Positions 10,981 to 53,242 of a DNA stretch of 64,000 bases are shown piece after piece. The DNA is taken from contig NW_027362762.1 of assembly GCF_046119375.1 (NCBI RefSeq), positions 639,406,001 through 639,470,000 on the forward strand. The letters run 5' to 3'. Both the position numbers and the translations under genes were made by a program. The notes beneath the pieces were generated by a model. That model had not been told where the DNA came from. It saw only the letters and a program-made list of their open reading frames with translations, and did no database searches. Within the stretch, counting starts at the first letter, position 1. Each line of letters begins with the position of its first letter. The stretch comes from Phyllobates terribilis (lineage: Eukaryota).

Positions 10981-10986
10981 TTTATT
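10981..10986 (-). terminator. Candidate polyadenylation signal (AATAAA) of the CENP-A gene
   Basis: Plus-strand tttatt at 10981-10986 is AATAAA on the minus strand, about 60 nt past the stop codon. I saw no histone stem-loop, consistent with a polyadenylated variant histone. Confidence 0.5.
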
Positions 10987-11047
10987 CATGGGGACTTTTC
11001 ATTGGGAAGATTAACAACTTTGGAAATGATGATTGTAACATGACATA

Positions 11048-14000
11048 TTATCCCATGTCACGCGTGATGCCGCGGATTCTGCGTGCAAGCTGTATGTCCT
11101 TTGCGTAGAGAGTGACTCTCTTGGCATGGAGACTGCACTGGTAGGAGTCTTCAAGGAGCCGCACGAGGAAGGCCTCAGCTGCCTGCGGATACAGGAAAAG
11201 GTATGAGCATTAAAGCATTCTGAATAATGAATGTGTACACATGAGGATTAACACTAGTTTAGGCCATTATATAACTTTTATGCAGCATTTTCACTGGTTT
11301 CCCCTCTGAGGTTTCTCTGATTTTCAGTTTTTGCTGAGCTGGTGGGTGGAGATTAGCTGCTATGATGCCTCACATACACAGCAGATACAGACATGAGGAA
11401 TTCCTGCTCTCCTGTTTATATATACAGAACATGTTAAAAAGCATCAGCAACATGCAGGATATTAAAATGCAGTACTAAGCAGTGCAGCTGTGAATCCAGT
11501 ACTGCACTAGAAAGCAGCATCACATTCTCTGCCTCCCCTTTTTATATATTCCAAGAGTAGCTGTAATCTGATCCCTCAACAAATACATGCAGCGTGATGG
11601 CTCAGTGGTTAGCACTGCAGCCTTACAGTGCTGAGCTCCTGGGTTTAAATCCCACCAGAGACTCCATTTGCAAAGAATTTGTATGTTTGTTTCTTGTATT
11701 TGTATGTTCTTCCTGTCTTTGCGTGGGTTTCTTCTGGGTCCTCCAGTTTCCTCCGACACTCCAAAGACACAATGATAAGGGATTTAGATTGTGAGCCCCA
11801 GTGGGGACAGTGATGATGTATGTAAAGTACTGCGAAAGATGATGGCAAGGAAAAATAAATCTACATTCCTCAAAATTGAAATTGCAACACCAAAACAGAA
11901 AAGTTGTGGAATTATAGAAATGAAAGGATGGATAGACACATGACAGATATGCAGACATCTCAGTTTATTCAGTATTGAGCGCCATATCCAGAAATTCCCG
12001 AACTTACACCTATTGGCTGCTATCAATAAGGTTATTAATGGTTGTCTCAGGAATGTTCTGCCAAAGCAGAATGCTCTTCGGCAAATCATCAAAGTCCACT
12101 GCTGGCAGATCTCCTTGCAATTGTCAACTAATGATGTCTCAGATGTGCTCAATGGGAGACAAGTCTGGAGACGCTGCAGGCCAACGCAGCATTTTTGGGT
12201 TACTCCAAGCAAAATGTGGCCTGGCTTTGTAATGTTGAAAAAATGTCTCATGAGAAGCTTTATTGAGAAATGACTGTACCACTGGTTCCATAACCAAATC
12301 AATGTAACACTGAGCTGTTAGTTTACGTGTAATGAAGACTACAAGTGTCTGGATAGTGTACATTATGCCATCCCACACCATAATCCCTGAAGTAGGACCA
12401 GTGTGACCTTACACTCATGAAGGCCTCTTCCCATGAGGATATCTGCAGGTTAATAAAGTTATTAACCTGCCCTGTGCAAGCACTTAGCCGAACGCTAAGG
12501 GGAGAAATTTAACTTTATTCCCCCCACAGCATTCAGGTTTCAGTGACAGGGGTGACGCCAGTTTAGTCACAGCTCTGAGCATACAGGGAAGCGGCTGTAA
12601 CCGTGCCCTCGGCACTGCCTGACAGCCGGCCTCAATGCAGAGTGAGTGTCAGTCAGGGCCAAGAACATGATTACAGCCGCCGCTCTGTGCACTCAGAGCA
12701 GTGACTGAACCCGGAACGCTGCCGGGGGTAATAAAATCAAATTTCTCCCTGCGGTGTTCGGCCAAGTGCGGGCACCGGCAGGTTAATTAACCCCATATCT
12801 ACAGGTTAATAGCGTTTTTTTCTGGGGACAGATTCTCTTTAATAACCTCATTGAAAGCAGCCAAGGCTTTAGGAACATGGGTTCCTGTGCTCAGACTAGA
12901 TGCTGCATAAGTTGAGATGTTTTGAAACTTTTGCTTTGATTTTTTCATCATTTGCACATCAGTAACGTGTATCCATCCTGTGATTTCCATGACTCCACCA
13001 CTTTTCCTTCTTCGTGCTACAATTTCAATGTTGAGTGTATTTTATAGGATGCTTTATATGCAGTACTTAACAACCCTATTCATAAGCATATTGGTATAAT
13101 GGAGGGTGGCCCTACTCAGCCCCCAATTACTTATCGTGTCCAAGCATTAGGACGGTATACTGACCTCCTGTAGCGCTGTTAGTGCTGTGCTTTGCCAGGA
13201 GTACGGCATGCCGCAGGAATACTCCAGGCAGATCTCTCTCACCTAAAGGAATGAAAGGAAATAAGACTTTTCCTACTGATCACTAAAAACGAAAGACCCA
13301 TTACAGCAGCCACCAAGATCAAATCCACTCACCAGTTTGGCAAATGGGAGTCTCCGGATGAGCAGCTCCGTCGACTTCTGGTACTTTCTTATTTCCATCA
13401 GCGCTCGAGTTCGCTGAGAGCAGCGTCTTCTCCGTGTAGGAGCCACCTCTTCACCCCTTCCTAGTTTGTTCGAAAAGAATACATCACAGCTTTAATGCTT
13501 CTTGCAATTATCACAGGGGGGCACTTTATACAGATTCATACATGACATAGAGTTATAATCCAAAAATCGGATCAATATTAAAGTTTATTGGTACAAAAAA
13601 ATTGAAACAAAATCGGGTCAAAGACATATATCACACAATATAAAAACATTCAGAAATAGCAAGGACACAGGTGTTTGTAGCTTCTGGTCCACTTATTATA
13701 TTGGGCAGGGGTGGTATGCAACCTTAGTGTCAAAAATCGTCACATCCCCAATTAGTGGCATGAGCCGGTGATTAGATTACATCACCATTATATCACTTCG
13801 GAGTACTGACAAAAGATCAATCATCATTTAGTATATCTACAAATATCTCATTAAATTGCTCTACCCTATAAAGTGCTGGTGCATTTAAAGTAAATTAGGA
13901 CATATATCACAACACATACGCCAATAAGCTGATCCATGTAGCCCCGGCCAGGGTCACATGCAGCAGCACACAGATAGTGTTGTTCACACAATCAAATGGG

Positions 14001-16295
14001 GGAACCATAGTCACAAGTCAAGGAGGCAACCTTACCCATAATGTAACCCAGTGGACACAAGCTAACAGCTAATTTACTTTAAAGAAGTTGTCCACTACTT
14101 TATATGAACCCCCCAATGTATCCCCCCGGGGTCCAGAAGTATTTTTATAAATACCTTGCAATACCTTTTGTGCCTCTGAGCGGCGGGTCACGTGATACCT
14201 GTGAGCGGTTAGTGATAGCGCCGCTCACAGGCAGAAAAGGCACCACAAGGTATTTAGAGAAACACTTATGGGCCCTGGGGGAATACATTGGGGGATCATA
14301 TAAAGTAGTGGACAACCCCTTTAAATGCACCAGCACATTATAGGGTACTGCAATTTAATGAGATATGTGTAGATATACTGAATGATTGATTTTGTGCCAT
14401 TTCTGGCTTTTTTATATTGTGTGATATACGTCTTTGGCCCAATTTTGTTTAAAGTTTATTGGTACAAAAAAAATAATTATGATCAGATTTTTGGATTATG
14501 ACTCCATATCTCTTATCAGAACTGAAGTTTTCTAGTGGAATATCCACTACAGCCTGCATCATTTGGGCAATAGGCTGTATTAATATATTCATGACAATTG
14601 TGAATCTGTTTTGGATGATATTGATTCTAGATTCATACATGAGCTCAGGAAAGTATTAAATAATGAGAGTCCTCAGTGGTTCATACCTTTTAATGGCTAA
14701 CTAAAAAGATGGTGACAAATAGCAAAAACCGAGAGGGTTCCAGCATCCGCCAATGATTAGAAGCTTAAAACATGACTTTTCATGAAAACTAAGATTTCAC
14801 AGCTTGAAACGCATAGACCAGTGTCCTTTTTATCTTCCTCCCCCATGTCTCCCCCATCCCCTTCCCCAACTTCATTGATATGTTTTTGCAAAAAAAACCT
14901 TTTTTTGTCCTTTTTCATTAAAAGTCTTGTTTTACATTTCTAATCATTGGTGGATGCTGGAACCCTCTCGTTTTTTCCTCTGCTACTGCCCAGCTGCCGC
15001 TCTGAAGTCCGTACACCACATTCTTCATATGGAGGCTTCAAACCATCTGTACTTGAAGAGCTGAACATTTCCTTTTCCCCTCTCCCATGATTTTTTAACT
15101 CACATATTTATACACAACAGAAAACAGGGATAATGCAGAAATAAGACAAGTGATGGGAAGCAGAACTATCAATGTGAGAAACAGTTGTGGCAGTAAATAT
15201 TGAGGCAGATCATAGATAAGGAGCGTGATAGTTTTATTGTCCTCTGATTGAGGTCTGTTCCAGAGTTGTGATACCCCCAAATGGTCTGAGGGGCACATTT
15301 CTTAAACGATGTAGAAAGACATAAATTCATGCGACACATTCATGCCTGCTCTGAGTGTGTCACTTGTTGTCATAAGTTTGTACTCCCAGACTCTCTTGTC
15401 TCTCTGTGGTGGGAAATGTGAAGTTACCGTTCAATACCAGCATCTCCCTGAAGAGTCTGGGAGTAGAAACTTATAACAAATGACAAACTGAGAGCAGGAA
15501 TGAATGTGTCACATGAATTTATATCTTTCTACATCAATTAAGGAATGTGTTCCTCAAACTATTTGGGGGAATCACAACCCTGGACCAGACCACAATCAGA
15601 ACGCAATAAAACTATCACACTCCTTATCCATGATCTACTCCATTATTTACTGCCACAGCAGTATCTCTGCGTCCCACATTGGTAGTTCTGCTTCCCGTCA
15701 CTTGTCTTATTTCTGCATTATTATTGTGTCCTGCTGTGTATAAATATGTGACTCCTCAGATTTTATGTTCTACTGAGCCTGATGAAGAGACCTGAGTAAT
15801 CTAGAAAGCTGCCATTAAAAGATATTAACCACTGAGGACTCTCAATCTTTAATATTTTTCTAGCTACATGGTACAAAGTTATGTTTCCTATATACGAGCA
15901 CGGTCATCCTGCATACATCAGCACAACCTGCTCCCCCTAGTGGCTGCAGAAAAGTTTGCATCTGCGTGCATAGACATTAGGATTTAAAAAAGATGCAATT
16001 GTGTTTTACCTGGGGACAACTGAGAAGTTGAGGGCCCTTCAAATTCTGGTGCTTTACGGAAGGACAGGCGCATTTTACTCTGGGGAGATTGAGAAGTTGA
16101 GGGCCCTTCAAATTCTGGTGCTTTACGGAAGGACAGGCGCATTTTACTCTGGGGAGATTGAGAAGTTGCAGAACTCTTTCTCTGAGGAGACTGAGAGGTT
16201 GAAGGCCTTGTACTTTGGGAGGATGGAGAAGCTGCAGTCCTCTTTTGTGGCTGCTTCAACTTTCTGCGGTGTTGAGGGCTCTGCTGATTTTTCAT
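11048..16295 (-). CDS. cenpa: CENP-A (cenH3) centromeric histone H3 variant, copy 1; 4 coding exons, 208 aa, intact
   Basis: Exons on the minus strand: 16295-16010 (286 nt), 13460-13333 (128), 13242-13165 (78), 11182-11048 (135 including TAA). Total 627 nt. All introns are GT-AG with phases 1,0,0. As I recall them, the phases and the 78/135-nt exons match human CENPA. Protein: [208 protein letters not shown]. The cenH3 diagnostics versus H3 are present: Q68->A, F84->W, T107->S and a loop 1 two residues longer. Confidence 0.95.
11589..11850 (+). mobile_element. tRNA-derived SINE (V-SINE-like, L2-type tail) in CENP-A intron 3
   Basis: Box A TGGCTCAGTGG at 11598-11608 and box B GGTTTAAATCC at 11642-11652. 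V-domain-like core gcgtgggtttc...ctccagtttcctcc...ctccaaagac, and 3' part tagattgtgagccccagtggggacag. Confidence 0.8.
11930..12390 (-). pseudogene. Old degenerate Tc1 transposase relic in CENP-A intron 3
   Basis: The ORF at 12139-12381 retains MVW.GI, LTAQ.YID.V.EPVV and [14 protein letters not shown]. The FQQDNARPH motif has decayed to FQHYKARPH. Confidence 0.85.
13546..14628. mobile_element. Insertion with inverted arms, flanked by a 14-bp direct repeat (retroelement relic, possibly Penelope-like), in CENP-A intron 1
   Basis: AGATTCATACATGA at 13532-13545 and 14629-14642. Arms ~13548-13890 and ~14320-14500 are reverse complements in blocks. The family assignment is inference. Confidence 0.5.
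14083..14320. mobile_element. TTAA-flanked foldback MITE (T2/Kolobok type), 238 bp
   Basis: TTAA at 14079-14082 and 14321-14324. TIRs AG(aa/gg)GTTGTCCACTACTTTATATGA. The interior is palindromic. Confidence 0.8.
14724..14976. mobile_element. Foldback MITE-like element with ~65-bp inverted arms
   Basis: aaaaaccgagagggttccagcatccgccaatgattagaa... pairs with ...ttctaatcattggtggatgctggaaccctctcgtttttt. Confidence 0.65.
15098..15855. mobile_element. ~650-bp hairpin (15098-15753) followed by a hammerhead-like core; probable Penelope-like element relic
   Basis: 15098-15345 is the reverse complement of ~15502-15753, with inner arms also pairing. CTGATGA at 15779-15785 and GAAA at 15804-15807. 15809-15853 is an inverted copy of 14654-14698. 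Confidence 0.6.
16021..16168 (-). repeat. Perfect 69-bp (23-aa) in-frame tandem duplication inside CENP-A coding exon 1
   Basis: 16021-16089 equals 16090-16158, followed by a 10-bp partial third copy. It encodes [23 protein letters not shown] twice. Also at 34496-34643 and 52968-53115. Confidence 0.95.
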
Positions 16296-16354
16296 GATGT
16301 AAAATGTTGAGACACAATCAAAGCTGCAAACAAGACAATTCAACAGGATCATAA

Positions 16355-16710
16355 ATTATTATTATTATTTATTATTATAAGCGCCATGGAATAAATGGCG
16401 CTTACATGTGAAAAAGGGGTATACGTAATAAAAACACTTCCAATAATATTGAAAAAAAGAGTCAGCGACTGGTACAGGAGGAGAGAGGACCCTGCCCGCG
16501 AGGGCTCACAATCTACAAGGGATGGGAGAGGATACAGTAGATGAGGGTAGAGTTGGTAGTGCAGCGTTATGGTGGAGCGGTGGTTACAGCAGGTTGTACG
16601 CTTGTCGGAAGTGGGTCTTCAGGTTCCTTTTGTAGGTTTCCATGGTAGGCGAGAGTCTGATATGTTGGGGTAGAGTGTTCCAGAGTAAGGGAGATACACG
16701 GAAGAAATCT
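16355..16710 (-). mobile_element. L2-clade LINE 3' end with (AAT)n tail, ~60 bp upstream of the CENP-A ATG
   Basis: Translation RDFFRVSPLLWNTLPQHIRLSPTMETYKRNLKTHF matches the L2 ORF C-terminal motif (R.F...P.LWN.LP..IR......FK..LKT). It is followed by a 3' UTR and an (att)n tail on the plus strand. Confidence 0.8.
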
Positions 16711-19700
16711 CGGTAATCAGTGGCCACTAGACCAGAGTCCTGTGAACTACCTCTTCTAATTAGTAGGCCCTGTGGGGTAATTACATTGTGTCGCAATGTA
16801 GGCATGATGTTGAGGGGGACTCCTAAGCAGAAGAGGTGTTGGGAATGTCACGAGTAGCAGAAGGCTTGCAGGGTTGTGGTCCAGCAGGCACTAAGGTGCA
16901 GCGAATCTGTTTGTGAAACTGTTTAACCTCATATACCTTTGCAAAAGTTCTCAGGTCTCCTGTCTGGAGGAGTTGTAAGAATTGTCAGAAGTCTGGCCCA
17001 TCCTCTAATAAGGAGCAGAGAAGATGAGATAAGACACGCAGGGCCACGTCACATGGGATTATCTCACTGAGAGGCTATGTTCACATGTTGCGTAACTTTT
17101 GCTGTGTTTTTTATTCAAATTAAAAGGCTGCTTTTCACGGTATCAGCAAAGTTAAAAGATTTCAGAAATATAATTCACAGGCTTGTTTTTTTCCACAACT
17201 ATATTGGAAAACTGCTGCGTTTTTTAAAACTGCAGCATGTCAATTCTTTCAGCATTTTTTCATCCATATAAAGCAATCAGTTTTTGTAGTGATTTTGTTT
17301 GAAAAAAATATATACAGGTACAGCAAGATGTGAAACACATTTATTTTGGGGATTTTCTTAAATTTGTGTCTTGGTATCCTCAAATGAGCATGGTTGTTAG
17401 TATTAGTACAGTTTACTTTAACACATACCACAAATTTAATTAAACAATGTCTGACCAACTCAATGCCCTACCAATGTGTGAGTGTCCTACCAATGTCTGA
17501 AAGTAAACAATGCCCTACAAATGTGTTAGGTTAAAAGTGGGCACCACACAGCCAGCACCACGTACAGTGGGAACCATGCGGATGGTAGCTTGATCCAATC
17601 ACTGCTGGTTAACCATTAAATGGCACTGTAACCCCTGACAGGCATTTATGTGGCACAGTCCTGGGGCCGTCTCCGTTCCTTCCCCATGATCCGATATCGG
17701 AGAGCTGATGTGCCACCATGGCAGCTGGGGCCCTGCTGATGCCACTGTTGCCGCCTTCTTGATACTCGTGTACAGCTGAGCCACAAGGGCCACATACGAG
17801 GCCGTGATCGCCACATACTGAAGTCCCGCACTATATACAACATTTCATGAGCACAGATGGAAGGGATAGAAAAGTAAGTAATAAATTCCCACCGCCTCCA
17901 TTTTCCTTGTTTAAAAATCCCCAAGTTATGAAAAATAAGAAGAATATCTGGTAACACTGAGCAAAACCATTCCCAGGACCCCGGAGTAGTGGCCCGGCTA
18001 CTGCCTCACTAGCTGCCGGCATCCCTGGAGCCTCTTAGGACTAGTAGGCCAGAACAGCCATTGCAGAGACCCGGGGGTGGAGCAGGTAGGGGGGCTGGCA
18101 TGGAGCCTCTACAGCACGGCCCTGACACTATTTTGCCCAATGCTAATATCTGGCATCACATATAAAGCCTCATGTAGCAGAATAACACCAGTAGGCGGTG
18201 CTGACACCCACGATTGTTTGCTGTGGATGTACAGTGTGAACGGAGCCGCTGAGCGCAGATCTGGGGGCGGAGTTGCGGCCGCTGCCGGGAACCACTGCTT
18301 TGTGCGCTGCAGTAACCACGGGAGGCCAGCAGAGGCCGCCACAGCCTGAGCGAGGCCCAGCAGCTCCAGTGTAAAATGACAGCTTATCTGTGAGGAGTCG
18401 GGTGGGAGTTGTAGTCCCACACGCTGCAGACCTCTGCTGCATAGAGTGGTGGGCACGTACAGGCAATCCCCCCGGTAATCCCCCCTCACCAGTCAGGACG
18501 CGTCTATCTCCTGCCGACAAGTTTCCACCTACGGCCCGCGCGCTGCTGCTTAGGAAACGGGGAGGGGCTTACATCCAGCCAATAGCTGCGGCCCATTTTT
18601 TCTCTCGTCTCAATAGACTTTATTGTACAAGACAATGAGAACATTATTCTGGAAGAGGAGATACAAAAATACACTGAGCCTATGGGGGTGACTGGCAGGG
18701 CGGGGGCCCAGAGAGTTGCCTGCTGTGGCACAGGTCAGGGAAGGAAGGTGCACGCTTCTATGGGGGGCACACATTCTCCCCCAGAATGCCTCAGGCCTCT
18801 TTCACACGTCAGTATTTCCGGTACGAGTGGTGACAGTTTCCACACATACCGGAGACACTGACACACGTAGACCCATTCTAATCTATGGTCTGCGCTCATG
18901 TCAGTGCGTTTCCACGGACCGTATGTCCCACACATAGACATGTCCGTTTTTGGCCGGCAGCACGGGTCACACGGACCCATTCAAGTCAATAACTCCGTGT
19001 AAACACGTACCGCACATGGATTTCTTCTGTGTGACACGTACCGGCACCTGAGAATCAGCGTACAGTTAGCGCTGTTCCCGAGCGCTGGGTGCTGAACGCT
19101 GCCCTCATCATGGTTCCCTGCGATCAGCACCAACAGGGACAATGATGAGAGTAGTAGTGTCTGCTCCCGCAGTGTCCAACTGTAAAAATAAGAACAAAAT
19201 TTAAATTACTCACCTGTCCTAAGTGTCCCCTGCTGTAATCCATCCCTGCAGTGAGCGGGCCCCGCAGCTGTGCTCTGCGAGTGACAGGATAGCGCTCAAT
19301 GAGCTCAGCGCAGCTTCGGGGTCCACTCACTGCAGGAGTCAGTCTCCTCGGTGTGAGCGATCGTATGGATTACAGCGGGGGACACTTAGGATTTTATTCT
19401 TATTTCTACACCAGGTCACAGCGGGAGCAGAATACTTCTCTCCTCATTGTCCCTGCTGGTGCTGATTGCAGCGCAAGCAGGGGACAATGATGAGGGCAGT
19501 GTTCGGCACTTGGAAACAGCGCTAACTGTACCACTGATTCCCAGGCGTCAATACATGTGTTCCTGATGCGGCACATGGTTGCCACGTGTATGTGTGGCGC
19601 CCCTGAGGGTACAGTCGCCACAGAGGTATTGCATCTCACCCAGAGGTGTGGTATCCCACTCTCAGGTAAGGATAGAGTGCTGCCCAGGACCCTAACACCT

Positions 19701-22700
19701 GCATCCAACACGTCCACTTCAGTAGGGCAGGGCGAGTTTGCTCCTAAGGGAGAGCACAGTCCCTGGTCCCTGGCTGGAGTGGAGGGGAACCAAGTGAGGG
19801 GGAACCATATAGTGGGTGTGGGTGGAGGACGTAGTTTAGGGAAGCACTTCAGTAGCTGTATAAAAAGGGGAGCCATCTTAGGCAGACAAGCCAGTCAGAG
19901 GAGGAGAAGTGAAAGGATCAGGGGCTCTGCAGGAGCTCTGCTCGGGAGGCGGGCCTAGCCCGAGAGGCCCAGGACTGAGAGAGGAGAGGGAGCAGGAGAA
20001 AGGCTCCAGGAACAGAAGGGATCCCAGGGGTAAGGGAAGTGCTGGAGGCCACTCGTACGCCCAAATCTGCCAGGCGGTGGAGGGATCGAGCCGCAGAGGG
20101 GACCGGCCCCTAAACTAGTGGAGAACTACAAGGCTCAGCTAGGAACCGGAGGCTGCTGTACTTGTAAGGTGCAGTGGCCACATCCGCAATTATATCGCTG
20201 AAAAGGTGGCCACAGAGGGTCCAGGGGACTGCAGGTCGCCCGACAAGACCCGAGGCTACCAGATTGGGACACTGGTTGCGAGGCGCAGGGCAGGAGGGCG
20301 AGAGCCAGCGCAGGAAGACGACTGAGGAAGGCACATAGAAAGGGGTCCTGTCAGGCACTCTTGAATTACCTGAGGGATTGCTGAACCCCTGCCTGGTGAA
20401 CGCAGCACGACGTGGGAGGTTGTAGTCTGGAACCTGTAACCTGAGGAACTTAATAACTGTGAATAAACTCGGAAGACTGCACCCCCCTCTCTCTGTGATT
20501 ATTATGTGCGCCATCACCCCTGCACTACAACGCCCAGCATCATCTGCATCACCTACAACATCTACACTGCCCTCGAGCTAAGCTCTGCCTGTGGAGAGCT
20601 GAACCAACCCTGCTGCACTAACATCAGCTCCAGAGGTTCTGCACCGCAGCTGCGGCTCCACATAGCCGCATACCACAGGTGGCGTCACAAACTATATATA
20701 TAAAAACTATAAATCCCCTGTAAATATCCCGCTTTTGATTGACCGCTCTGGGTCACGGACCGGGTCACTGCGACTGTGACATCTCCCATAGCCACGACCG
20801 GCCCGGCACCGAGTACCCCACGGCCCCGGGGGCGCGTCATATGCCACACAGGTGCACCTGGATATCTTCGGTACTGTTTTTTTCCGGTACCGAAATATCA
20901 GGATGTGTGAAAGAGCCCTCAGTGTAATGTCTCCAATTTTCCACCAGCCATTCCAGCTCTTCATCTTCCCCACACAAATCCAGCTGCTGCCACTGCATTA
21001 CATGTGGCTGCTGTGGGCCCATCACTATCTGACAGTGTTCATCTGTGAAGATGGGAATAACCCTTTAAGGATTGTCATTCAAAGTCTATATAAAAAATGT
21101 TGCCACTTTTCATAGACGAGAATTACTTGCCTCCAGTACTTTAGGCCACAGTTTGGATGCAGTCCCACAAAGCTACCGTCGGATGCCAGCAAATTGCAGT
21201 CAAGATCCGAAGTCACCGGAGTTGTCAGATTGATTGGTCATTATTAATGGGATTGTCCACTACTCAGACAACTCCTTCTCAATCACCATATTTTCTCATA
21301 TAAAATAATAATAGCCTTTACTCACATCCAGTGCCGGCGCCGTTAAAGTGACATCGGTGATGGTTCATAACTGATATCCAGAGGGAGTGAGAGAGTATCA
21401 GCAGCTCTCACTTATTCTGTGTGTCAGTTTCGTCTGAACTAAGTGAGCGTGAAGCGATCCATTATCAGTCGCTGATAGGCTGCTGGGCTCACGTAACATA
21501 ACGTCACTATAGACCCAAGCCAGTAAGTACAGGCTGTTATTATTTTACACGGTGGAGTATTGTAATTAGGGGGGTGTTGCTAGCATCAAAGATCCGTGGC
21601 TCTGGCCCTACACTTCTTAGCCGGAACTCCGGATTACCTGTGACCGCCGCATTGAACTGTGTCAACATGATGCCTATACAGTTAAATCCCGTGATAGAGC
21701 AGGGAACAAAATATCCCTTCTCTATTGCTGCCCATTTCCTAAGCCCCAGAGTGCTATAAGCCTGCAGCTCACGAGGCGCCACTTCTGCAGGTCCACTATA
21801 GAAGCCAGAAGCAGAGACACAGGCTGCGGTGCTGGGAGTCTGGATGAGGTGAGTATAATCTTTATTGTTTTTCATATTATTGCGTTGTGGGAGAACATTA
21901 CCTGTATATTAGGGAGCTGTGGGAGACCATCGTCTATATACAGAGGGGGCTGTGGGAGACCATCAGTATACACAAGAGGCTGTGTGGGACCATGATAATG
22001 TATACAGAGGGGGCCATAGGAGACCATCATCTGTATACACAGAGGGCTGTGGGAGACCATAATTGTTATGCGCTTCGCAGAGGGACTCAGCAATACTGGT
22101 ACAGAACCAGCAAAGGCGTGGCCACAGATGCACTTGGCTCAAACTGCCCCGCTAGGCGAGCCCTTTAGGGTTGGGAGTACTCTTTTCCCAGCTCGCAGTA
22201 AATGGAAGAGGGACTTCGGCAGAGCCCTTCCCTAGGCCTACTGTTGCCAGACAGCTGGAATCTGGTGACGCAGCTGGTGACTAGTCAAGAACCAAGGTGA
22301 GTACCACTGCAAGAACCCGAGGAAGTAAAACCAGACGAGAAAATGAGAAAACCCCTGAAAAGTTAGCAAGACTAATGCTAGCACCACTCACCACCATGCA
22401 CATAGGGAACTGAAATAAACAGCAAAGGACTGAGCAGGGAGCAGGGTTATATAGCCTGCTTAATGATCAGGTACTGAATACCTCCCAATTATCCCCAGAC
22501 AACCACTTCCTGCTAGCTTCAACAGCCGACTGGACAAAATTTCACCATTGCTTAGTACAGGACAAAACAGCGTCCTGTGTTGCCTGGCAACCGGGGAAGA
22601 CAGCGTCCCATCTTCCCTGGGAGAGAAATCAGGAAGAGAAAGGGATAAAAAAAAATCGGAGCATGATCTGACCACAATATATCTCCGATTGATGCCTCAG

Positions 22701-42163: not shown

Positions 42164-43812
42164 CAGTCATATGAAAAAGTTTGGGCACCCCTATTAATCT
42201 TAAGCTTAATGTTTTATAAAAATTGGTGTTTATGCAACAGCTATTTCAGTTTGATATATGTAATAACTGTTGGACACAGTAATGTTTCTGCCTTGAAATG
42301 AGGTTTATTGTACTAACAGAAAATGTGCAATCTGCATTCAAACAAAATTTGACAGGTGCATAAGTATGGGCACCCTTATCATTTTCTTGTATTAAATACT
42401 CCTACCTACTTTTTACTGACTTACTAAAGCACTTTTTGGGGTTTTGTAACCTCATTGAGCTTTGAACTTCATAGCCAGGTGTATGCAATCATGAGAAAAG
42501 CTACTTAAAGTGGCCACTTGCAAGTTGTTCTCCTGTTTGAATCTCCTCTGAAGAGTGGCATCATGGGCTCCTCAAAACAACTGTCAAATGATCTGAAAAC
42601 AAAGATTATTCAACATAGTTGTTCAGGTGAAGGATACAAAAACTGTCTCAGAGATTTAACCTGTCAGTTTCCACTGTAAGGAACATAGTAAGTAAATGGA
42701 AGAACACAGGCACAGTTCTTGTTAAGGCCAGAAGTGGCAGGCCAAGAAAAACATCAGAAAGGCAGAGAAGAAGAATGGTGAGATCAGTCAAGGACAATCC
42801 TCAGACCATCTCCAGAGAGCTGCAGCATCAACTTGCTGCAGATGGTGTCACTGTGCATCGGTCAACTATACAACGCACTTTGCACAAGGAGAAGCTGTAT
42901 GGGAGAGTGATGCGAAAGAAGCCGTTTCTGCAAGCACGCCACAAACAGAGTCGGCTGAGGTATGCAAAAGCACAATTGGAGAAGCCAATTTTTTTTTGGA
43001 AGAAGGTCCTGTGGACTGATGAAACCAAGATTGAGTTGTTTGGTCATACAAAAAGGAGTTATGCATGGCGGCAAAAAAACACAGCATTCCAAGAAAAACA
43101 CTTGCTACCCACAGTAAAATTTGGTGGAGGTTCCATCATGCTTTGGGGCTGTGTGGCCAATGCCGGCACCGGGAATCTTGTTAAAGTTGAGGGACGCATG
43201 GATTCCACTCAGTATCAGCAGATTCTTGACAATAATGTTCAAGAATCAGTGATAAAGTTGAAGTTACGCAGGGGATGGATCTTTCAGCAAGACAATGATC
43301 CAAAACACCGCTCAAAATCTACTCAGGCATTCATGCAGAGGAACAATTACAATGTTCTGGAATGGCCATTCCAGTCCCCAGACCTGAATATCATTGAACA
43401 TCTGTGGGATCATTTGAAGAGGGCTGTCCATGCTCGGCGACCATCAAACTTAACTGAACTGGAATTGTTTTGTAAAGAGAAATGGTCAAAAATACCTTCA
43501 TCCAGGATCCAGGAACTCATTAAAAGCTACAGGAAGCGACCAGAGGCTGCTATTTTTGCAAAAGGAGGATCTACTAAATATTAATGTCACTTTTCTGGTG
43601 AGGTGCCCATACTTATGCACCTGTCAAATTTTGTTTGAATGCAGAGTGCACATTTTCTGTTAGTACAATAAACCTCATTTCAAGGCAGCAACATTACTGT
43701 GTCCAACAGTTATTACATATATCAAACTGAAATAGCTGTTGCAAAAACACCAATTTTTATAAAACATTAAGCTTAAGATTAATAGGGGTGCCCAAACTTT
43801 TTCATATAACTG
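42164..43812 (+). mobile_element. Full-length Tc1 DNA transposon, IR/DR type, in U3 (same insertion site as U2)
   Basis: Same termini, TA TSD and flanks as the U2 copy. I found 3 substitutions relative to it. Confidence 0.97.
42563..43584 (+). pseudogene. Tc1 DD34E transposase with the same -1 frameshift
   Basis: Identical ggatacaaaaactgtctc frameshift and the same 269-aa downstream ORF (42775-43584). Confidence 0.93.
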
Positions 43813-46800
43813 TATATATCCATATCATGTGTAGATATATACCAACCCATATACTGTATATCAGGGGTCTCAAACTCGGCTAAGTATATGGGCCGCACAG
43901 AAAAAATGTGAATTTGAAGGGCCACATTCATTGCAGAGTGATATTAAATTTTTAATGGTACCAAATTGTTTTTTCTATACACCTTTTGGATCATTTTTGG
44001 GCTTTTTTATTTTATTCTTTTACATGGCATTCATTTTATGGGCTATGGTACAGTTTTACAGTTTTTACAATTTTTATTTCCCCTAATTGGTAACATACAG
44101 TGATTTGTGTTCTTACAATTTGCACCATATAGTAATTCTGACCAACTTCTCATAGTAATGTCTCCATCGTGTAGTAGTTTCCCCATCTCGTGGTAATGTC
44201 CCCATCCTGGTCCCCATCTTGCAGTAATGTCCCCATCCTTGTCCGCATCTTGTAATAATGTCCTCCATCTTGGTCCCCATCTTGCAGTAATGTCCCCATC
44301 TTGTAATAATGTCCTCCATCTTGGTCCCCATCTTGTAGTAATGTGCCCATTCTGGTCCCCATCTTGTAGTAATGTATCCATCTTGTAGTAGTTTCCCCAT
44401 CTTGTAGTAATGTCCCCATCCTGGTCCCCATCTTGCAGTAATGTCCCCATCCTTGTCCGCATCTTGTAATAATGTCCTCCATCTTGGTCCCCATCTTGTA
44501 GTAATGTGCCCATACCGGTCCCCATCTTGTAGTAATGTGCCCATACCGGTCCCCATCTTGTAGTCATGTTACAACTGCCAGCAGGTTATAACAGCCCACC
44601 GAGTCCTGTGTCCTCCGGGGAAGTGATCCAGCCAACTCTCAGGTAACTTGAGTGCACTTGATCGGGACCCCATTCTTGTGTACCTTTCTCGGGTCGTCTC
44701 TCTCTGCGCTGGCTTTCGCCCTCCTGCCCTGCGCCTCACACACAGTGTCCCGAGCCAGTGGCCGCAGGCCTTGTCCTCTCTGTCCTATATGGCCACCTTT
44801 TCAGCGAATGTGTGTGGTTTTGGCTACGGCACTTAGAGATACCGCAGCCTCCGGTTTGCTAGTTGAGTCTTGCAGTCCTCCACTAGTCTGGGGCCGGTCC
44901 CCTACTGTGACCTGATCCCTTCTCCCGACTACGGTCGGTGTGAGTTCGGGCGCACAGGTGGACTCCGCACTTCCCGTGGCCCTAGGATCCCTTCTCTGTC
45001 TCTGGAGCCCTTCTCTGACTCCCTCGCTCCTCTCATTCTCTCTCCTACTGGGCCCCTCTAACTGGGTCCTCACTCTGTCTGGACCCTACTCCTCAATGGT
45101 CCTCACTCACTGGGCGCTTCTAGATGTTTCTACCTGTCTTTTTATACTGTCTGTCATGTGACCCACGTCACTAACTGTCACTCTACGTGGTCCCCTCTAC
45201 CTTCAGTCATTCCTTGTGTGCTCCCTTAAACTACTTCCTCCACCCACTTCCTCTACCTAGTTCCCTCCTCCAGACAGGGACAGGGACTGTGCTCTCCCTC
45301 AAGAACAATCTCGCCCTTCCCTACTGGAGTGATGTGGTGTTGGATGTGGGTGTGTGGGTCCTGGGTAGTGCTCCCTCCTTACCCGAGAGTGGGGTACCAC
45401 ACCTCTGGCTGAGATGCAGTACCTCTGTGGCGACTGGACCCGCAGGGGCGCCACACTCACCTAAAGAGGGCACCAGGGCTGAAGATGATTTTAGCAACTG
45501 TATGGGAGACAAGAACCTGTTGGGCCTTATCCAATCTACCAGACTGTAAATATTGTAATTACTCCTTTCCCCCAAGTAAAACCCCAGTTATGGTTAATAA
45601 CTTTGTGTCCTCTGAAATTATGACTGCCCTGGTCCCAGAAGAGAAATGTCTGGAGACAGCCACGACCGGATGGTGTGAAGTAAGTGAAGAATGTCACATG
45701 CACTGCCACACATCAGAGGGAGGACACGAATTGTCTGCAAGGAGCCAAAAAGAGCAGGGGCCACAACTCGCCCACGACTACCTCGCTGGGGCACCTTACA
45801 GGCCAATGCTGGTCCTTAACTTGTAGAACATTCAACTGAAAAGAATCACGGATTTCGGCGGCCCTCAGAACCAGGTCGTAATCATTACGGGGGCTCCGGT
45901 GCCTGCTGGCCTCATTAAGCAGCCTCAGGGGCCGTATGCGGCCCTCGGGCCGCATATTTGAGTCCCTTGCTGTATATGAACATACATACAAGCAAACCTA
46001 GGCCTGTTACCAAACAGTGAACTTGAAACTAGATAGATGTTCTGAACTGATTACTATAGAGGACTATCAACCTCCTATACAACATAGCTTATTCCTGTTT
46101 GAGAGGTATTGGAATGAAGAGGGAAATAAAAAATCACTCAAATACAAAAGACCAATCAGTCTGGAGGAGAAGGGTCAGATTATCTCTAGAATTGTGACTC
46201 AATTTTTGCTGGGGACGAGGCACATCTTCCATCCCAGGGCCTACAGGTAGGTCTGGCCAGTCCGATGATGACACTGAAACAAGAGGCAAACCAAGTCCTG
46301 CAGTAAACGCCGTAAATCTCCCATGCAGAGCTGAACATGTAAAGTACCAGAATGACGTACTTGTAGACAGAAGGGAAAACCCCATGAATAAAGAATTTCT
46401 TGATGTCGCAATATGTCCAATAAAGGTCTCAGAGCTCTTCTCTTTTGTAGAGCGTGGTGTGATAGATCATGTTTAACATGTTCCTGGTAGGTTATAGAAT
46501 CCATCCCACGGGCCTTATTAAGAATATTTTGCTTCACTTTATATCTTACAGACACGGCGATACCAATTAGGTGTACTTTTTTGTTTAGTTTTTTTTAATT
46601 ACAAACGCTGCGTTTTGAGTGCCAAAATGGTTTTTCGTGATTTGTGTACGTTTTTTTTTTTACATATTTTAACTTTTTTAAAATTTTTCCCTGTGGGACA
46701 TGTATAATTTTTACTTTGATTTCTGGTCTCATACACTGCAGTGCATGAGAGCAGTCAGCGAGTCACTGACTCACCCTGTGAGACCCAGCTTATAGTTGGA

Positions 46801-47997
46801 TCTCACAGGCCACCATACCCTGGGGTCATCACATGACCTCAGGGTAAAATGGTAACCATTAAGATCCGCGATTCTCACTGCGAGGTTCCAACGGTTACTA
46901 AGAGGGTCTTGCAACATGCACAGCTGACACCCACAGAAACTGCAGCTGCCGGTATTTCCTTATTCCCAATCGCCGTTTTAAAATGGCGATCAGGAATAAG
47001 GCCCCTTAACAATCACCTTTTCTAATGCGTATCGGTGGTCATTAAGTCATTAAGGTGTTAAAACCACATGTTATCTGGTTAAAGCCCTATGTCCCTAATT
47101 TATTATGGAGATTTTTGAGCCATTAGAAAATGATGTTTTTCATGCAAAAACCACCTCAGAAAACTCCTTTTCTAGGAAGCTGTTGGAGCAGTTTCTCTCC
47201 TAAAGTATCTTTTGCAGCCTTTTGATATGACAAGGCCTAGTATGGAGCAGATTCTGCAACAGAATGAGGGAAACAGATTAGGAAACAAGCGGTTAAGGCT
47301 CTCATAAGATGCTATTGGGTTCATGAACTTTTTTTGACTGGAGGTATAATTTGTTGTATTGTATAATGGTACAGTAACAACTGCAACCAAAATAAGCTCT
47401 GCAGATAATGACCTCAATAAGCACAATCTGAACAAACAAAGAGGCAGTGTAAAGCATAAGGGATGGAAAGAGCAAAAGTCTGAATCACTCAGTCGGTGGA
47501 TTTCACACTGTCTACTGCTCCAAAGGACAATGCAGCTAAGCTCCATTCAATGATCACAGCTGAGTCCTAACAGACAGAAGTGTAACAACAAAGTAATAAA
47601 CAAACATCCTTATTTTATTAATATACAAAACACAACTGAATAAAATAAAGCATTAAAGTGATACAAAATAACAAATAACTTTATGAACGGAACGCACCTC
47701 CCCGCATGAGTGTTAGAGCCCCCCATACACATTAGACTAACATCAGTCTTTACACCAATCCCATTAGAATTCCTCATTGCTACCAGCAAAATCTTTGGTT
47801 ACAAATCACATAGCATTTACCCCCATAATAAATGGAAACATGCCAGCACCGAACTAATGCCAGAAGGGGGCACTAAAGCTGGCTTACCTTCAAACTTCTG
47901 TATTTTTATGAAACTTGGGAAAATAACGTTTTTATTCATGGGGACTTTTCATTGGGAAGATTAACAACTTTGGAAATGATGATTGTAACATGACATA

Positions 47998-50900
47998 TTA
48001 TCCCATGTCACGCGTGATGCCGCGGATTCTGCGTGCAAGCTGTATGTCCTTTGCGTAGAGAGTGACTCTCTTGGCATGGAGACTGCACTGGTAGGAGTCT
48101 TCAAGGAGCCGCACGAGGAAGGCCTCAGCTGCCTGCGGATACAGGAAAAGGTATGAGCATTAAAGCATTCTGAATAATGAATGTGTACACATGAGGATTA
48201 ACACTAGTTTAGGCCATTATATAACTTTTATGCAGCATTTTCACTGGTTTCCCCTCTGAGGTTTCTCTGATTTTCAGTTTTTGCTGAGCTGGTGGGTGGA
48301 GATTAGCTGCTATGATGCCTCACATACACAGCAGATACAGACATGAGGAATTCCTGCTCTCCTGTTTATATATACAGAACATGTTAAAAAGCATCAGCAA
48401 CATGCAGGATATTAAAATGCAGTACTAAGCAGTGCAGCTGTGAATCCAGTACTGCACTAGAAAGCAGCATCACATTCTCTGCCTCCCCTTTTTATATATT
48501 CCAAGAGTAGCTGTAATCTGATCCCTCAACAAATACATGCAGCGTGATGGCTCAGTGGTTAGCACTGCAGCCTTACAGTGCTGAGCTCCTGGGTTTAAAT
48601 CCCACCAGAGACTCCATTTGCAAAGAATTTGTATGTTTGTTTCTTGTATTTGTATGTTCTTCCTGTCTTTGCGTGGGTTTCTTCTGGGTCCTCCAGTTTC
48701 CTCCGACACTCCAAAGACACAATGATAAGGGATTTAGATTGTGAGCCCCAGTGGGGACAGTGATGATGTATGTAAAGTACTGCGAAAGATGATGGCAAGG
48801 AAAAATAAATCTACATTCCTCAAAATTGAAATTGCAACACCAAAACAGAAAAGTTGTGGAATTATAGAAATGAAAGGATGGATAGACACATGACAGATAT
48901 GCAGACATCTCAGTTTATTCAGTATTGAGCGCCATATCCAGAAATTCCCGAACTTACACCTATTGGCTGCTATCAATAAGGTTATTAATGGTTGTCTCAG
49001 GAATGTTCTGCCAAAGCAGAATGCTCTTCGGCAAATCATCAAAGTCCACTGCTGGCAGATCTCCTTGCAATTGTCAACTAATGATGTCTCAGATGTGCTC
49101 AATGGGAGACAAGTCTGGAGACGCTGCAGGCCAACGCAGCATTTTTGGGTTACTCCAAGCAAAATGTGGCCTGGCTTTGTAATGTTGAAAAAATGTCTCA
49201 TGAGAAGCTTTATTGAGAAATGACTGTACCACTGGTTCCATAACCAAATCAATGTAACACTGAGCTGTTAGTTTACGTGTAATGAAGACTACAAGTGTCT
49301 GGATAGTGTACATTATGCCATCCCACACCATAATCCCTGAAGTAGGACCAGTGTGACCTTACACTCATGAAGGCCTCTTCCCATGAGGATATCTGCAGGT
49401 TAATAAAGTTATTAACCTGCCCTGTGCAAGCACTTAGCCGAACGCTAAGGGGAGAAATTTAACTTTATTCCCCCCACAGCATTCAGGTTTCAGTGACAGG
49501 GGTGACGCCAGTTTAGTCACAGCTCTGAGCATACAGGGAAGCGGCTGTAACCGTGCCCTCGGCACTGCCTGACAGCCGGCCTCAATGCAGAGTGAGTGTC
49601 AGTCAGGGCCAAGAACATGATTACAGCCGCCGCTCTGTGCACTCAGAGCAGTGACTGAACCCGGAACGCTGCCGGGGGTAATAAAATCAAATTTCTCCCT
49701 GCGGTGTTCGGCCAAGTGCGGGCACCGGCAGGTTAATTAACCCCATATCTACAGGTTAATAGCGTTTTTTTCTGGGGACAGATTCTCTTTAATAACCTCA
49801 TTGAAAGCAGCCAAGGCTTTAGGAACATGGGTTCCTGTGCTCAGACTAGATGCTGCATAAGTTGAGATGTTTTGAAACTTTTGCTTTGATTTTTTCATCA
49901 TTTGCACATCAGTAACGTGTATCCATCCTGTGATTTCCATGACTCCACCACTTTTCCTTCTTCGTGCTACAATTTCAATGTTGAGTGTATTTTATAGGAT
50001 GCTTTATATGCAGTACTTAACAACCCTATTCATAAGCATATTGGTATAATGGAGGGTGGCCCTACTCAGCCCCCAATTACTTATCGTGTCCAAGCATTAG
50101 GACGGTATACTGACCTCCTGTAGCGCTGTTAGTGCTGTGCTTTGCCAGGAGTACGGCATGCCGCAGGAATACTCCAGGCAGATCTCTCTCACCTAAAGGA
50201 ATGAAAGGAAATAAGACTTTTCCTACTGATCACTAAAAACGAAAGACCCATTACAGCAGCCACCAAGATCAAATCCACTCACCAGTTTGGCAAATGGGAG
50301 TCTCCGGATGAGCAGCTCCGTCGACTTCTGGTACTTTCTTATTTCCATCAGCGCTCGAGTTCGCTGAGAGCAGCGTCTTCTCCGTGTAGGAGCCACCTCT
50401 TCACCCCTTCCTAGTTTGTTCGAAAAGAATACATCACAGCTTTAATGCTTCTTGCAATTATCACAGGGGGGCACTTTATACAGATTCATACATGACATAG
50501 AGTTATAATCCAAAAATCGGATCAATATTAAAGTTTATTGGTACAAAAAAATTGAAACAAAATCGGGTCAAAGACATATATCACACAATATAAAAACATT
50601 CAGAAATAGCAAGGACACAGGTGTTTGTAGCTTCTGGTCCACTTATTATATTGGGCAGGGGTGGTATGCAACCTTAGTGTCAAAAATCGTCACATCCCCA
50701 ATTAGTGGCATGAGCCGGTGATTAGATTACATCACCATTATATCACTTCGGAGTACTGACAAAAGATCAATCATCATTTAGTATATCTACAAATATCTCA
50801 TTAAATTGCTCTACCCTATAAAGTGCTGGTGCATTTAAAGTAAATTAGGACATATATCACAACACATACGCCAATAAGCTGATCCATGTAGCCCCGGCCA

Positions 50901-53242
50901 GGGTCACATGCAGCAGCACACAGATAGTGTTGTTCACACAATCAAATGGGGGAACCATAGTCACAAGTCAAGGAGGCAACCTTACCCATAATGTAACCCA
51001 GTGGACACAAGCTAACAGCTAATTTACTTTAAAGAAGTTGTCCACTACTTTATATGAACCCCCCAATGTATCCCCCCGGGGTCCAGAAGTATTTTTATAA
51101 ATACCTTGCAATACCTTTTGTGCCTCTGAGCGGCGGGTCACGTGATACCTGTGAGCGGTTAGTGATAGCGCCGCTCACAGGCAGAAAAGGCACCACAAGG
51201 TATTTAGAGAAACACTTATGGGCCCTGGGGGAATACATTGGGGGATCATATAAAGTAGTGGACAACCCCTTTAAATGCACCAGCACATAGGGTACTGCAA
51301 TTTAATGAGATATGTGTAGATATACTGAATGATTGATTTTGTGCCATTTCTGGCTTTTTTATATTGTGTGATATACGTCTTTGGCCCAATTTTGTTTAAA
51401 GTTTATTGGTACAAAAAAAATAATTATGATCAGATTTTTGGATTATGACTCCATATCTCTTATCAGAACTGAAGTTTTCTAGTGGAATATCCACTACAGC
51501 CTGCATCATTTGGGCAATAGGCTGTATTAATATATTCATGACAATTGTGAATCTGTTTTGGATGATATTGATTCTAGATTCATACATGAGCTCAGGAAAG
51601 TATTAAATAATGAGAGTCCTCAGTGGTTCATACCTTTTAATGGCTAACTAAAAAGATGGTGACAAATAGCAAAAACCGAGAGGGTTCCAGCATCCGCCAA
51701 TGATTAGAAGCTTAAAACATGACTTTTCATGAAAACTAAGATTTCACAGCTTGAAACGCATAGACCAGTGTCCTTTTTATCTTCCTCCCCCATGTCTCCC
51801 CCATCCCCTTCCCCAACTTCATTGATATGTTTTTGCAAAAAAAACCTTTTTTTGTCCTTTTTCATTAAAAGTCTTGTTTTACATTTCTAATCATTGGTGG
51901 ATGCTGGAACCCTCTCGTTTTTTCCTCTGCTACTGCCCAGCTGCCGCTCTGAAGTCCGTACACCACATTCTTCATATGGAGGCTTCAAACCATCTGTACT
52001 TGAAGAGCTGAACATTTCCTTTTCCCCTCTCCCATGATTTTTTAACTCACATATTTATACACAACAGAAAACAGGGATAATGCAGAAATAAGACAAGTGA
52101 TGGGAAGCAGAACTATCAATGTGAGAAACAGTTGTGGCAGTAAATATTGAGGCAGATCATAGATAAGGAGCGTGATAGTTTTATTGTCCTCTGATTGAGG
52201 TCTGTTCCAGAGTTGTGATACCCCCAAATGGTCTGAGGGGCACATTTCTTAAACGATGTAGAAAGACATAAATTCATGCGACACATTCATGCCTGCTCTG
52301 AGTGTGTCACTTGTTGTCATAAGTTTGTACTCCCAGACTCTCTTGTCTCTCTGTGGTGGGAAATGTGAAGTTACCGTTCAATACCAGCATCTCCCTGAAG
52401 AGTCTGGGAGTAGAAACTTATAACAAATGACAAACTGAGAGCAGGAATGAATGTGTCACATGAATTTATATCTTTCTACATCAATTAAGGAATGTGTTCC
52501 TCAAACTATTTGGGGGAATCACAACCCTGGACCAGACCACAATCAGAACGCAATAAAACTATCACACTCCTTATCCATGATCTACTCCATTATTTACTGC
52601 CACAGCAGTATCTCTGCGTCCCACATTGGTAGTTCTGCTTCCCGTCACTTGTCTTATTTCTGCATTATTATTGTGTCCTGCTGTGTATAAATATGTGACT
52701 CCTCAGATTTTATGTTCTACTGAGCCTGATGAAGAGACCTGAGTAATCTAGAAAGCTGCCATTAAAAGATATTAACCACTGAGGACTCTCAATCTTTAAT
52801 ATTTTTCTAGCTACATGGTACAAAGTTATGTTTCCTATATACGAGCACGGTCATCCTGCATACATCAGCACAACCTGCTCCCCCTAGTGGCTGCAGAAAA
52901 GTTTGCATCTGCGTGCATAGACATTAGGATTTAAAAAAGATGCAATTGTGTTTTACCTGGGGACAACTGAGAAGTTGAGGGCCCTTCAAATTCTGGTGCT
53001 TTACGGAAGGACAGGCGCATTTTACTCTGGGGAGATTGAGAAGTTGAGGGCCCTTCAAATTCTGGTGCTTTACGGAAGGACAGGCGCATTTTACTCTGGG
53101 GAGATTGAGAAGTTGCAGAACTCTTTCTCTGAGGAGACTGAGAGGTTGAAGGCCTTGTACTTTGGGAGGATGGAGAAGCTGCAGTCCTCTTTTGTGGCTG
53201 CTTCAACTTTCTGCGGTGTTGAGGGCTCTGCTGATTTTTCAT
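47998..53242 (-). CDS. cenpa: CENP-A (cenH3), copy 3; intact
   Basis: Exons 53242-52957, 50410-50283, 50192-50115, 48132-47998. Same protein as copy 1. Intron 1 is 3 bp shorter. Confidence 0.94.

Follow-up and report, generated by a model that had tools for sequence, protein, structure and literature searches.

A tandem array of CENP-A-type genes

CENP-A defines the sites of kinetochores and its dosage is normally tightly controlled. An array of intact genes for a protein of this type lies in a 64-kb stretch of DNA from the golden poison frog, Phyllobates terribilis (about 639,406,001–639,470,000 of the 985-Mb scaffold JBJBSG010000002.1, or scaffold 2, in assembly GCA_046119375.1), referred to here as the window; coordinates are positions in the window unless a scaffold is given. 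Tandem Repeats Finder (TRF) and self-BLAST showed that the window is tiled by one long head-to-tail repeat with partial units at both ends. The complete units measure 18,475, 18,475 and 16,822 bp, with an inter-unit identity of 99.89–99.95%, and each carries one CENP-A-type gene on the minus strand: copy 1 in unit A (6863–25338, delimited by the self-BLAST match of 6863–42163 to 25338–60635 at 99.91%), copy 2 in unit B (25338–43813) and copy 3 in unit C (43813–60635), which lacks a 1.65-kb Tc1-like element. An initial annotation of this stretch, made from its letters, had described a tandem array of intact, intron-containing CENP-A-type genes in units of 16.8 and 18.5 kb, and the self-BLAST units, the three 208-amino-acid (aa) open-reading frames (ORFs) and the GT-AG introns bear this out. 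We consider it likely that these genes represent a lineage-specific second CENP-A gene of P. terribilis that was amplified into a homogenised tandem array of six copies.

The gene was rebuilt by hand from a three-frame reading of the minus strand in one unit, with inspection of the junctions. Every copy has four coding exons separated by GT-AG introns in phases 1, 0, and 0, an A at position −3 of the ATG, an AATAAA soon after the stop codon, and a long 3′ untranslated region (3′UTR). On the minus strand, the 208-aa coding region occupies 16295–16010, 13460–13333, 13242–13165, and 11182–11048 in copy 1, where the manual model is joined by spliced contigs, and, from the manual model, 34770–34485, 31935–31808, 31717–31640, and 29657–29523 in copy 2 and 53242–52957, 50410–50283, 50192–50115, and 48132–47998 in copy 3. 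The end points first assigned to the array, 11048 and 53242, are exact, being the last base of the copy 1 stop codon and the A of the copy 3 ATG. Copies 1 and 3 have identical coding sequences, with a 3-bp deletion in intron 1 of copy 3, while the sole coding difference of copy 2 is the non-synonymous change E164Q (window 31642, equivalent to 13167 in copy 1). This change alters the glutamate of the ‘ALQE’ motif, which is invariant in the other 8 aligned dendrobatid CENP-A-type sequences and is also found in H3.

RefSeq models, whose proteins were retrieved using a 122-aa genomic ORF containing exon 1 as the query, place six genes named ‘histone H3-like centromeric protein A’ across ~ 113 kb, numbered here as copies 0–5, with copies 1–3 in the window. 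The six coding regions begin at 639,395,838, 639,417,048, 639,435,523, 639,453,998, 639,470,818, and 639,493,609 of JBJBSG010000002.1, at gene-to-gene spacings of 21,210, 18,475, 18,475, 16,820, and 22,791 bp. Protein P0001 (XP_073525237.1) is exactly that of copy 2, P0006 (XP_073526764/5/6) is exactly that of copies 1 and 3 plus one further gene, and the last two genes encode P0002 (XP_073526767/8), a 185-aa protein that lacks one of the 23-aa repeats. A fourth copy had been expected from ~ 64.8 kb and a gene does begin there, but it encodes the 185-aa variant with one repeat fewer. The array also runs off both ends of the window, as had been stated, but it is not open-ended, since one more copy (copy 0) lies on the left and two, the 185-aa copies 4 and 5, lie on the right. 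At the left edge, unit homology ends 1.37 kb past the stop codon of copy 0, and the next 8.6 kb, in which no weaker unit match was found, are filled with other transposon fragments. At the right edge, homology upstream of copy 5 weakens in steps, 99.8%, 97.8%, and finally 85.7% at ~ 3 kb above the ATG. Within the flanking sequence inspected, the array is finite with six annotated genes; further units behind a large insertion are conceivable beyond the 10-kb flanks.

Identity of the encoded protein

The Pfam Histone family (PF00125) matched exon 2 (E 1e-8) and exon 4 (E 1e-13), and the best solved-structure matches of the array protein in the PDB were CENP-A or CENP-A chimeras, at 128–137 bits compared to 105–118 bits for H3. 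Loop 1 is 2 residues longer than in H3, as seen from a 2-residue gap on the H3 side of a BLASTP alignment with an H3.3-like protein, and only residues 113–202 align to H3, the tail aligning instead to dendrobatid CENP-A tails. The CENP-A-type length of loop 1, most of helix α2, and the hydrophobic C-terminal tail are kept. By these comparisons, the array gene retains the hallmarks of CENP-A. The changes specific to the array cluster before helix αN, where the usual ‘YRPG’ has given way to other residues and two glutamates have been gained, and further changes in the loop 1/α2 region include an R to C substitution that turns the loop-1 ‘RG’ into ‘CG’. The same ‘CG’ is present in all three Dendrobates tinctorius CENP-A proteins recovered (P0003, P0004, and P0007).

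The N-terminal tail has expanded through a 69-bp (23-aa) tandem repeat in exon 1, scored by TRF at 2.4 copies and visible in the proteins (16004–16168, and again at 34479–34643 and 52951–53115, minus strand). The 23-aa unit is present in three copies in the 208-aa genes and in two copies in the 185-aa genes, a difference of one 69-bp indel, and it is a duplicated form of a block also present in the Ranitomeya tail (roughly S-RK-PE-EGPSTS-LSPG).

A conserved CENP-A gene on another scaffold

The presence of a separate cenpa gene elsewhere in the assembly had been proposed as a check on the array, and one was found: a conserved CENP-A of 180 aa (P0005; XP_073495690/1) is encoded at 185.25 Mb on JBJBSG010000007.1 (scaffold 7), a different scaffold from that of the array. 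The array protein is 64% identical to P0005, and its C-terminal tail reads RDMG compared to DGLG in the conserved copy. The scaffold-7 protein has lost the tail block shared with Ranitomeya and instead repeats an 11-aa unit. At the DNA level, the two loci are collinear over an upstream block, exon 1, exons 2–3, and exon 4 with the 3′UTR and ~ 1 kb beyond, at 67–80% identity (~ 72% across the larger blocks). Since this collinearity includes the upstream block, the array gene derives from a DNA-based duplication that carried the promoter along and not from a retrocopy. In a comparison of six dendrobatoid genes, some of which are modelled with one more coding exon, upstream or internal, the final three coding exons measured 125–128, 78, and 135 nt with matching phases in the array, scaffold 7, Ranitomeya imitator, Ranitomeya variabilis, and D. 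tinctorius; Anomaloglossus baeobatrachus shares the first two of these, its modelled last exon being 171 nt and not 135.

Age and selective constraint

A tree of 40 amphibian CENP-A proteins, with no H3 sequence included, nested the array copy within the CENP-A clade of the dendrobatids (support 96/91). A DNA tree of 1,599 columns, covering coding and flanking non-coding blocks, gave the topology (Anomaloglossus,(array,(scaffold 7,(Dendrobates,(R. imitator, R. variabilis))))), with support of 99/99 for Dendrobates plus Ranitomeya and of 78/84 for scaffold 7 joining them. Both P. terribilis copies fall outside Dendrobates plus Ranitomeya, and the data are compatible with the array and scaffold 7 being sisters (approximately unbiased (AU) test, p = 0.18). 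This topology dates the duplication to about the split of Phyllobates from the other Dendrobatinae (Ranitomeya and Dendrobates), suggesting that the array gene is an old duplicate, about as old as that split. The protein tree also grouped the array with D. tinctorius (95/84); this grouping was rejected by the DNA alignment with introns and UTRs (AU p = 0.0016) and is taken as a long-branch or convergent signal.

Selection was estimated from 89 ungapped histone-fold codons, the N-terminal tail lying outside the test. The pairwise comparison of the array to scaffold 7 gave a dS of 0.315 and a dN/dS of 0.27, while scaffold 7 compared to Ranitomeya gave a dN/dS of 0.10–0.12. Of the changes unique to the array branch, 10 are synonymous and 11 non-synonymous (ω ~ 0.35; binomial p = 0.015 for ω < 1) and for the scaffold-7 branch the counts are 5 and 2 (ω ~ 0.13), the array copy having about five times as many amino-acid changes as the scaffold-7 copy. 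No positive selection was found in the histone fold, either on the array branch or pairwise (0.18–0.30), where purifying selection is relaxed. These values point to a paralog that evolves faster but has long been under purifying selection in the histone fold. A conserved and a divergent CENP-A have therefore been retained together across a divergence as deep as that between genera.

Loss of a promoter element from the array

A four-way alignment of the array, scaffold 7, and both Ranitomeya loci shows a conserved block ~ 2.2 kb upstream of the exon with the ATG. In copy 1, this alignment and the sequence place a promoter core and a non-coding first exon at 18490–18583 on the minus strand (core 18540–18583, with a predicted exon start), comprising an inverted CCAAT box (ATTGG, 18583–18579), a GC box, and a conserved CAG/GTGAG-type donor. 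The first exon ends at 18490, has its GT donor at 18489–18488, and is spliced to the acceptor before 16324. Exact matches to the core, also on the minus strand, lie at 1716–1759 for copy 0, whose coding exons are left of the window (locus L006), at 37015–37058 for copy 2, and at 55487–55530 for copy 3.

Scaffold 7 and Ranitomeya have in common a 24-nt stretch with TTTAAATTCAAA, located between the GC box and the donor, that is wholly absent from the array. TTTAAA and TTTGAA are cell cycle genes homology region (CHR) elements, and it is through them that DREAM and MMB-FOXM1 time the expression of G2/M genes, CENPA included, in the cell cycle. The array promoter has lost this 24-nt block and the CHR-like motif that it holds, a loss that would be expected to uncouple the array genes from G2/M control.

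Transcription of the array gene

Four RNA-type sequencing runs contained 10–17% of the sampled words of the 5.5-kb gene, which is about its exonic share. Contigs from three or four of the runs, aligned without mismatches to 10750–16700, join 11181 to 13164, 13237 to 13328 (equivalent to 13242/13333), and 13459 to 16009. All of these joints have CT..AC ends, corresponding to GT..AG on the minus strand, so that all three coding introns are covered and the spliced transcripts sought as a check on the gene were recovered. The contigs reach through the 3′UTR to at least 10750 and show the E form at codon 164. Those over 16139–16324 stop exactly at the acceptor before 16324 and continue in extra sequence that is not the adjacent DNA (~ 97 nt in run X1), indicating an upstream 5′UTR exon, which fits the predicted non-coding first exon. 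A genomic retrocopy is unlikely as the source of the joined contigs. The share of exon 1 alone that was recovered came to 0.74–0.85 in at least 12 small runs from two RNA-type studies as well as in DNA runs of this organism, and to 0.70 in a run that bears a second species label.

Contig depth in the RNA-type runs reached hundreds to ~ 20,000 at 11546–12142, 12740–12938, 14133–14729, and 16322–16700, all intronic or upstream. We take these very deep segments to be transcribed dispersed repeats and not the array gene.

Probable homogenisation of the units

Over ~ 7 kb of gene and flanks, the six copies differ at 11 single-nucleotide polymorphism (SNP) columns, with 1–8 differences per pair. The patterns conflict: copy 4 shares variants with copy 5, copy 2, and copy 3 at different sites, a 3-bp deletion is common to copies 3 and 5, and the presence of a long interspersed nuclear element (LINE) and the number of 69-bp repeats occur in all four combinations among the copies. 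Such sharing of SNPs, indels, and the LINE is what exchange between units would produce. The LINE, 4.38 kb in length, is inserted in the 5′UTR intron of the non-adjacent copies 0 and 4 (L006 5157–9536 and L002 5158–9536) and contains two ORFs, one of 953 aa with endonuclease and reverse-transcriptase domains and one of 362 aa. Copy 5 has an insertion of ~ 6 kb upstream of its promoter. The 1.65-kb Tc1-like transposon, detected as an indel in the self-BLAST, lies at 23688–25338 on the plus strand in unit A, with a 269-aa transposase ORF (24300–25109) matching HTH_Tnp_Tc3_2 and DDE_3, and again at 42163–43813 in unit B. It is absent from unit C and from the partial unit at the start of the window, and accounts for the 1.65-kb length difference among units. 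Mosaic variants and shared transposon insertions together suggest unequal crossing-over and gene conversion among units, with recurrent mutation or repeat slippage as the alternative. The paralog is old, and the array itself would be either young or continuously homogenised.

CENP-A copies in other frogs

The premise of the initial annotation that CENP-A is normally single-copy in vertebrates fails for annotated frog genomes. Several CENP-A loci are annotated in RefSeq or GenBank in six other genera (Rhinoderma, Anomaloglossus, Mixophyes fleayi, Pseudophryne corroboree, Nanorana parkeri, and Rhinophrynus dorsalis). In Rhinoderma darwinii, at least nine distinct CENP-A proteins are encoded on two chromosomes; one of these, of 144 aa, is the product of two loci (L012 and L013; CM116781.1, 73.43 and 73.47 Mb) that are separated by 37 kb and match at 99.89% identity along 8.4 kb. 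Five or six CENP-A-like loci are annotated on three chromosomes of Anomaloglossus baeobatrachus. The frog duplicates group by species in the protein tree, indicating that they arose in independent events. Set beside these, the P. terribilis array seems the most clear-cut example of a broader and undescribed pattern in frogs.

Literature searches on CENP-A or cenH3 duplication or arrays in amphibians returned no description of either, and none of this array. The 2025 P. terribilis draft-genome paper, which concerns an older assembly, makes no mention of histones, and in recent reviews flies, mosquitoes, worms, and plants are the only groups listed with cenH3 paralogs. The array is already in the automatic annotation, as six RefSeq genes, but as far as found it is undescribed, and no paper was found on such an arrangement in any vertebrate.

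Two further observations concern individual species. On A. baeobatrachus CM109170.1 (L011), the 237-aa model P0147 contains the N-terminal tail twice, and the locus has an internal duplication (7951–11445 and 16018–19507, 94% identity). In D. tinctorius, P0003 and P0007 (166 and 167 aa; contig JAYMGB010000060.1) differ by an extra P in the tail and by A to S in ‘PFARL’, and may be two genes or two alleles.

Origin and possible role of the array

The whole gene was copied as DNA, including the CCAAT/GC-box promoter, the non-coding first exon, the four coding exons, all introns at their ancestral positions, and the 3′UTR. The scaffold-7 copy has kept a slowly evolving histone fold while the array copy diverged under purifying selection, its tail growing by the 23-aa repeat to two or three copies and its promoter losing the 24-nt CHR-like block. 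Unequal crossing-over and gene conversion would then have amplified and homogenised the units. The array protein presumably still forms CENP-A-type nucleosomes, and the added copies together with the altered promoter would give a different supply of a variant centromeric histone, probably higher or uncoupled from the cell cycle. By analogy with the insect paralogs discussed below, the germline or early embryo is the most plausible setting for this supply. For the ampliconic CENP-A family proposed in the initial annotation, it is the structure, age, constraint, and transcription that are supported, while dosage, germline specialisation, and centromere drive are candidate roles.

Several points weigh against a constrained and functional second CENP-A. 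The evidence on the array consists of DNA sequence and RNA-type contigs, and the transcript data come from four runs of one 2024 study, with coded run and tissue names and a run type guessed as RNA, in which contig depth over the exons is low (~ 4–10). The ω of 0.35 is drawn from only 89 codons and would also fit a gene whose constraint is partly relaxed as it becomes redundant, and because the six copies are 99.9% identical, their intact ORFs add no separate evidence of constraint. The array departs from the conserved copy at two residues linked to contacts with the kinetochore, in the loop-1 ‘CG’ and the C-terminal RDMG. The 24-nt promoter block is termed CHR-like by its motif (TTTAAA/TTCAAA), and the copy number of six comes from the assembly and its annotation, with 10 kb of flank inspected on either side.

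The amplification might instead have been neutral or nearly neutral, with a redundant second CENP-A, six copies arising as a by-product of unequal crossing-over in a transposon-rich region, and transcription driven by the copied promoter. The units are so alike that intact ORFs are silent on selection for copy number, ω is raised compared to the conserved copy, and copy 2 is changed at an otherwise invariant residue (E164Q). Such a course is nevertheless unlikely in our judgment, as the open frame, all splice sites, and an ω below 1 have been kept over an inter-genus-deep divergence, and the independent multi-copy CENP-A of several other frogs hints at a recurrent cause. The protein might alternatively have become a non-centromeric H3-like variant for bulk or specialised chromatin, for example in gamete packaging, to which the array-specific changes before αN (the replaced ‘YRPG’ and the new acidic residues), the loop-1 R to C and C-terminal tail changes, and the lost CHR-like promoter block would lend themselves. 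This seems improbable for a protein that keeps the CENP-A-type loop-1 length, most of helix α2, and the hydrophobic C-terminal tail, whose closest solved structures are CENP-A, and whose loop-1 C is also present in all three recovered D. tinctorius CENP-A proteins. Finally, with units 99.9% identical and the count of six taken from the assembly, one or two real copies could have been falsely expanded by mis-joined haplotypes or repeat mis-assembly. All six copies are structurally distinct, however, in the Tc1-like element, the LINE, the 6-kb insertion, the 69-bp repeats, the 3-bp indel, E164Q, or private SNPs; two mis-joined haplotypes cannot be the source of six distinct units, and we regard an assembly artefact as very improbable.

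A lineage-specific second CENP-A, amplified and homogenised, thus remains the reading that we favor. A broader proposal is put forward tentatively, as possible though doubtful: CENP-A amplification would be recurrent in frogs (Phyllobates, Rhinoderma, Anomaloglossus, Mixophyes, and others, with at least two cases of homogenised tandem copies), and the Phyllobates paralog would have been rewired by promoter-element loss and tail expansion to supply a germline or early-embryo variant pool in response to centromere drive or gigabase-sized chromosomes. If recurrent amplification and specialisation were true, frogs would be the first vertebrate system for cenH3 paralog specialisation. Evidence that the work of centromeres can be split between soma and germline, or molded by drive, comes mainly from the retained cenH3 paralogs of flies, mosquitoes, worms, and plants, and an old, constrained, and transcribed second CENP-A in a six-copy array would extend this picture to vertebrates, a case strengthened by the conserved copy in the same genome and by the similar expansions in other frogs. 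The locus would also link gene copy number, promoter rewiring through the lost CHR-like block, and tail-repeat expansion in one place, in a group of animals for which Xenopus egg extracts are a strong centromere-assembly assay system.

Comparison with known histone gene systems

Compared to canonical vertebrate CENP-A (human CENPA, Xenopus cenpa, and here P0005), the array gene has the same fold, longer loop 1, non-H3 tail, and intron positions, a CCAAT/GC-box promoter with a non-coding first exon, and CENP-A as its best solved structures. It differs in being present as six tandem copies instead of one, in its 64% identity to the conserved copy of its own genome, in the 23-aa tail repeats, in the absence of the CHR-like block, and in the loop-1 R to C and altered C-terminal tail.

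Drosophila Cid1–Cid5 and the mosquito cenH3 paralogs are single-copy and dispersed, with tissue specificity reported (Kursel & Malik 2017; Kursel et al. 2020, 2021; cited in PMC12321929 and PMC12031959). As in these insects, an old and divergent cenH3 has been retained in the frog beside a conserved one and the N-terminal tails have diverged, which is the basis of the germline analogy, whereas the frog paralog is itself a homogenised multi-copy array and belongs to a vertebrate. One of the Mimulus genes CENH3A and CENH3B is reported to be implicated in suppressing centromere drive (cited in PMC12321929). Caenorhabditis hcp-3/cpar-1 and the plant CENH3 duplicates likewise represent two cenH3 genes kept per genome, as here, but these are low-copy, while the frog array is tandem at 99.9% identity. 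The R. darwinii cluster resembles the array in having several CENP-A genes on one chromosome and a near-identical pair; it is an independent duplication, as its copies group together in the tree, and its proteins are 143–144 aa long with no tail expansion.

The ampliconic families of mammalian sex chromosomes and the multi-copy short H2A variants are often germline-expressed and linked to genetic conflict, and they too consist of near-identical tandem copies of chromatin genes homogenised by exchange. The short H2A families are of a different histone class and lie on sex chromosomes, while the frog array is on scaffold 2. Replication-dependent histone clusters are also tandem and are thought to serve dosage; unlike those genes, the array genes have three coding introns and a 5′UTR intron, an AATAAA, and a long 3′UTR, and an Rfam scan of the unit found no histone 3′ stem-loop.

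Other features of the unit and of neighboring loci

The CENP-A-type gene had been described as the only recognisable host gene in the unit, and Pfam and Rfam scans agree, with no further coding sequence recognised except the Tc1-like transposase. Among ORFs elsewhere in the unit, the ten longest (nine of which lie outside the gene) matched no Pfam family, an intron fragment of Tc1-like appearance had no Pfam match, and Rfam gave no match anywhere in the unit.

The head-to-head neighbor of CENP-A in both Ranitomeya species is a gene whose protein matches Mg_trans_NIPA and EamA and which we presume to be SLC35F6-like; its annotated first exons look doubtful. To see which P. terribilis locus is ancestral, the Ranitomeya flanks were compared with the window, the scaffold-7 locus, and the array edges (blastn, tblastx, and tblastn; 10-kb flanks), which detected the shared promoter block only and no coding exon of the neighbor. 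A kilobase-scale tandem repeat of short period separates the transporter-like neighbor from the CENP-A promoter block in both species (L008 1532–4126 and L009 1–7537).

Each unit of the array also contains, downstream of the gene, a 31-bp minisatellite of ~ 9 copies, scored at 63- and 82-bp periods as well (7230–7619, 25707–26094, 44180–44569, and 61003–61390), which yields long spurious ORFs on the minus strand.

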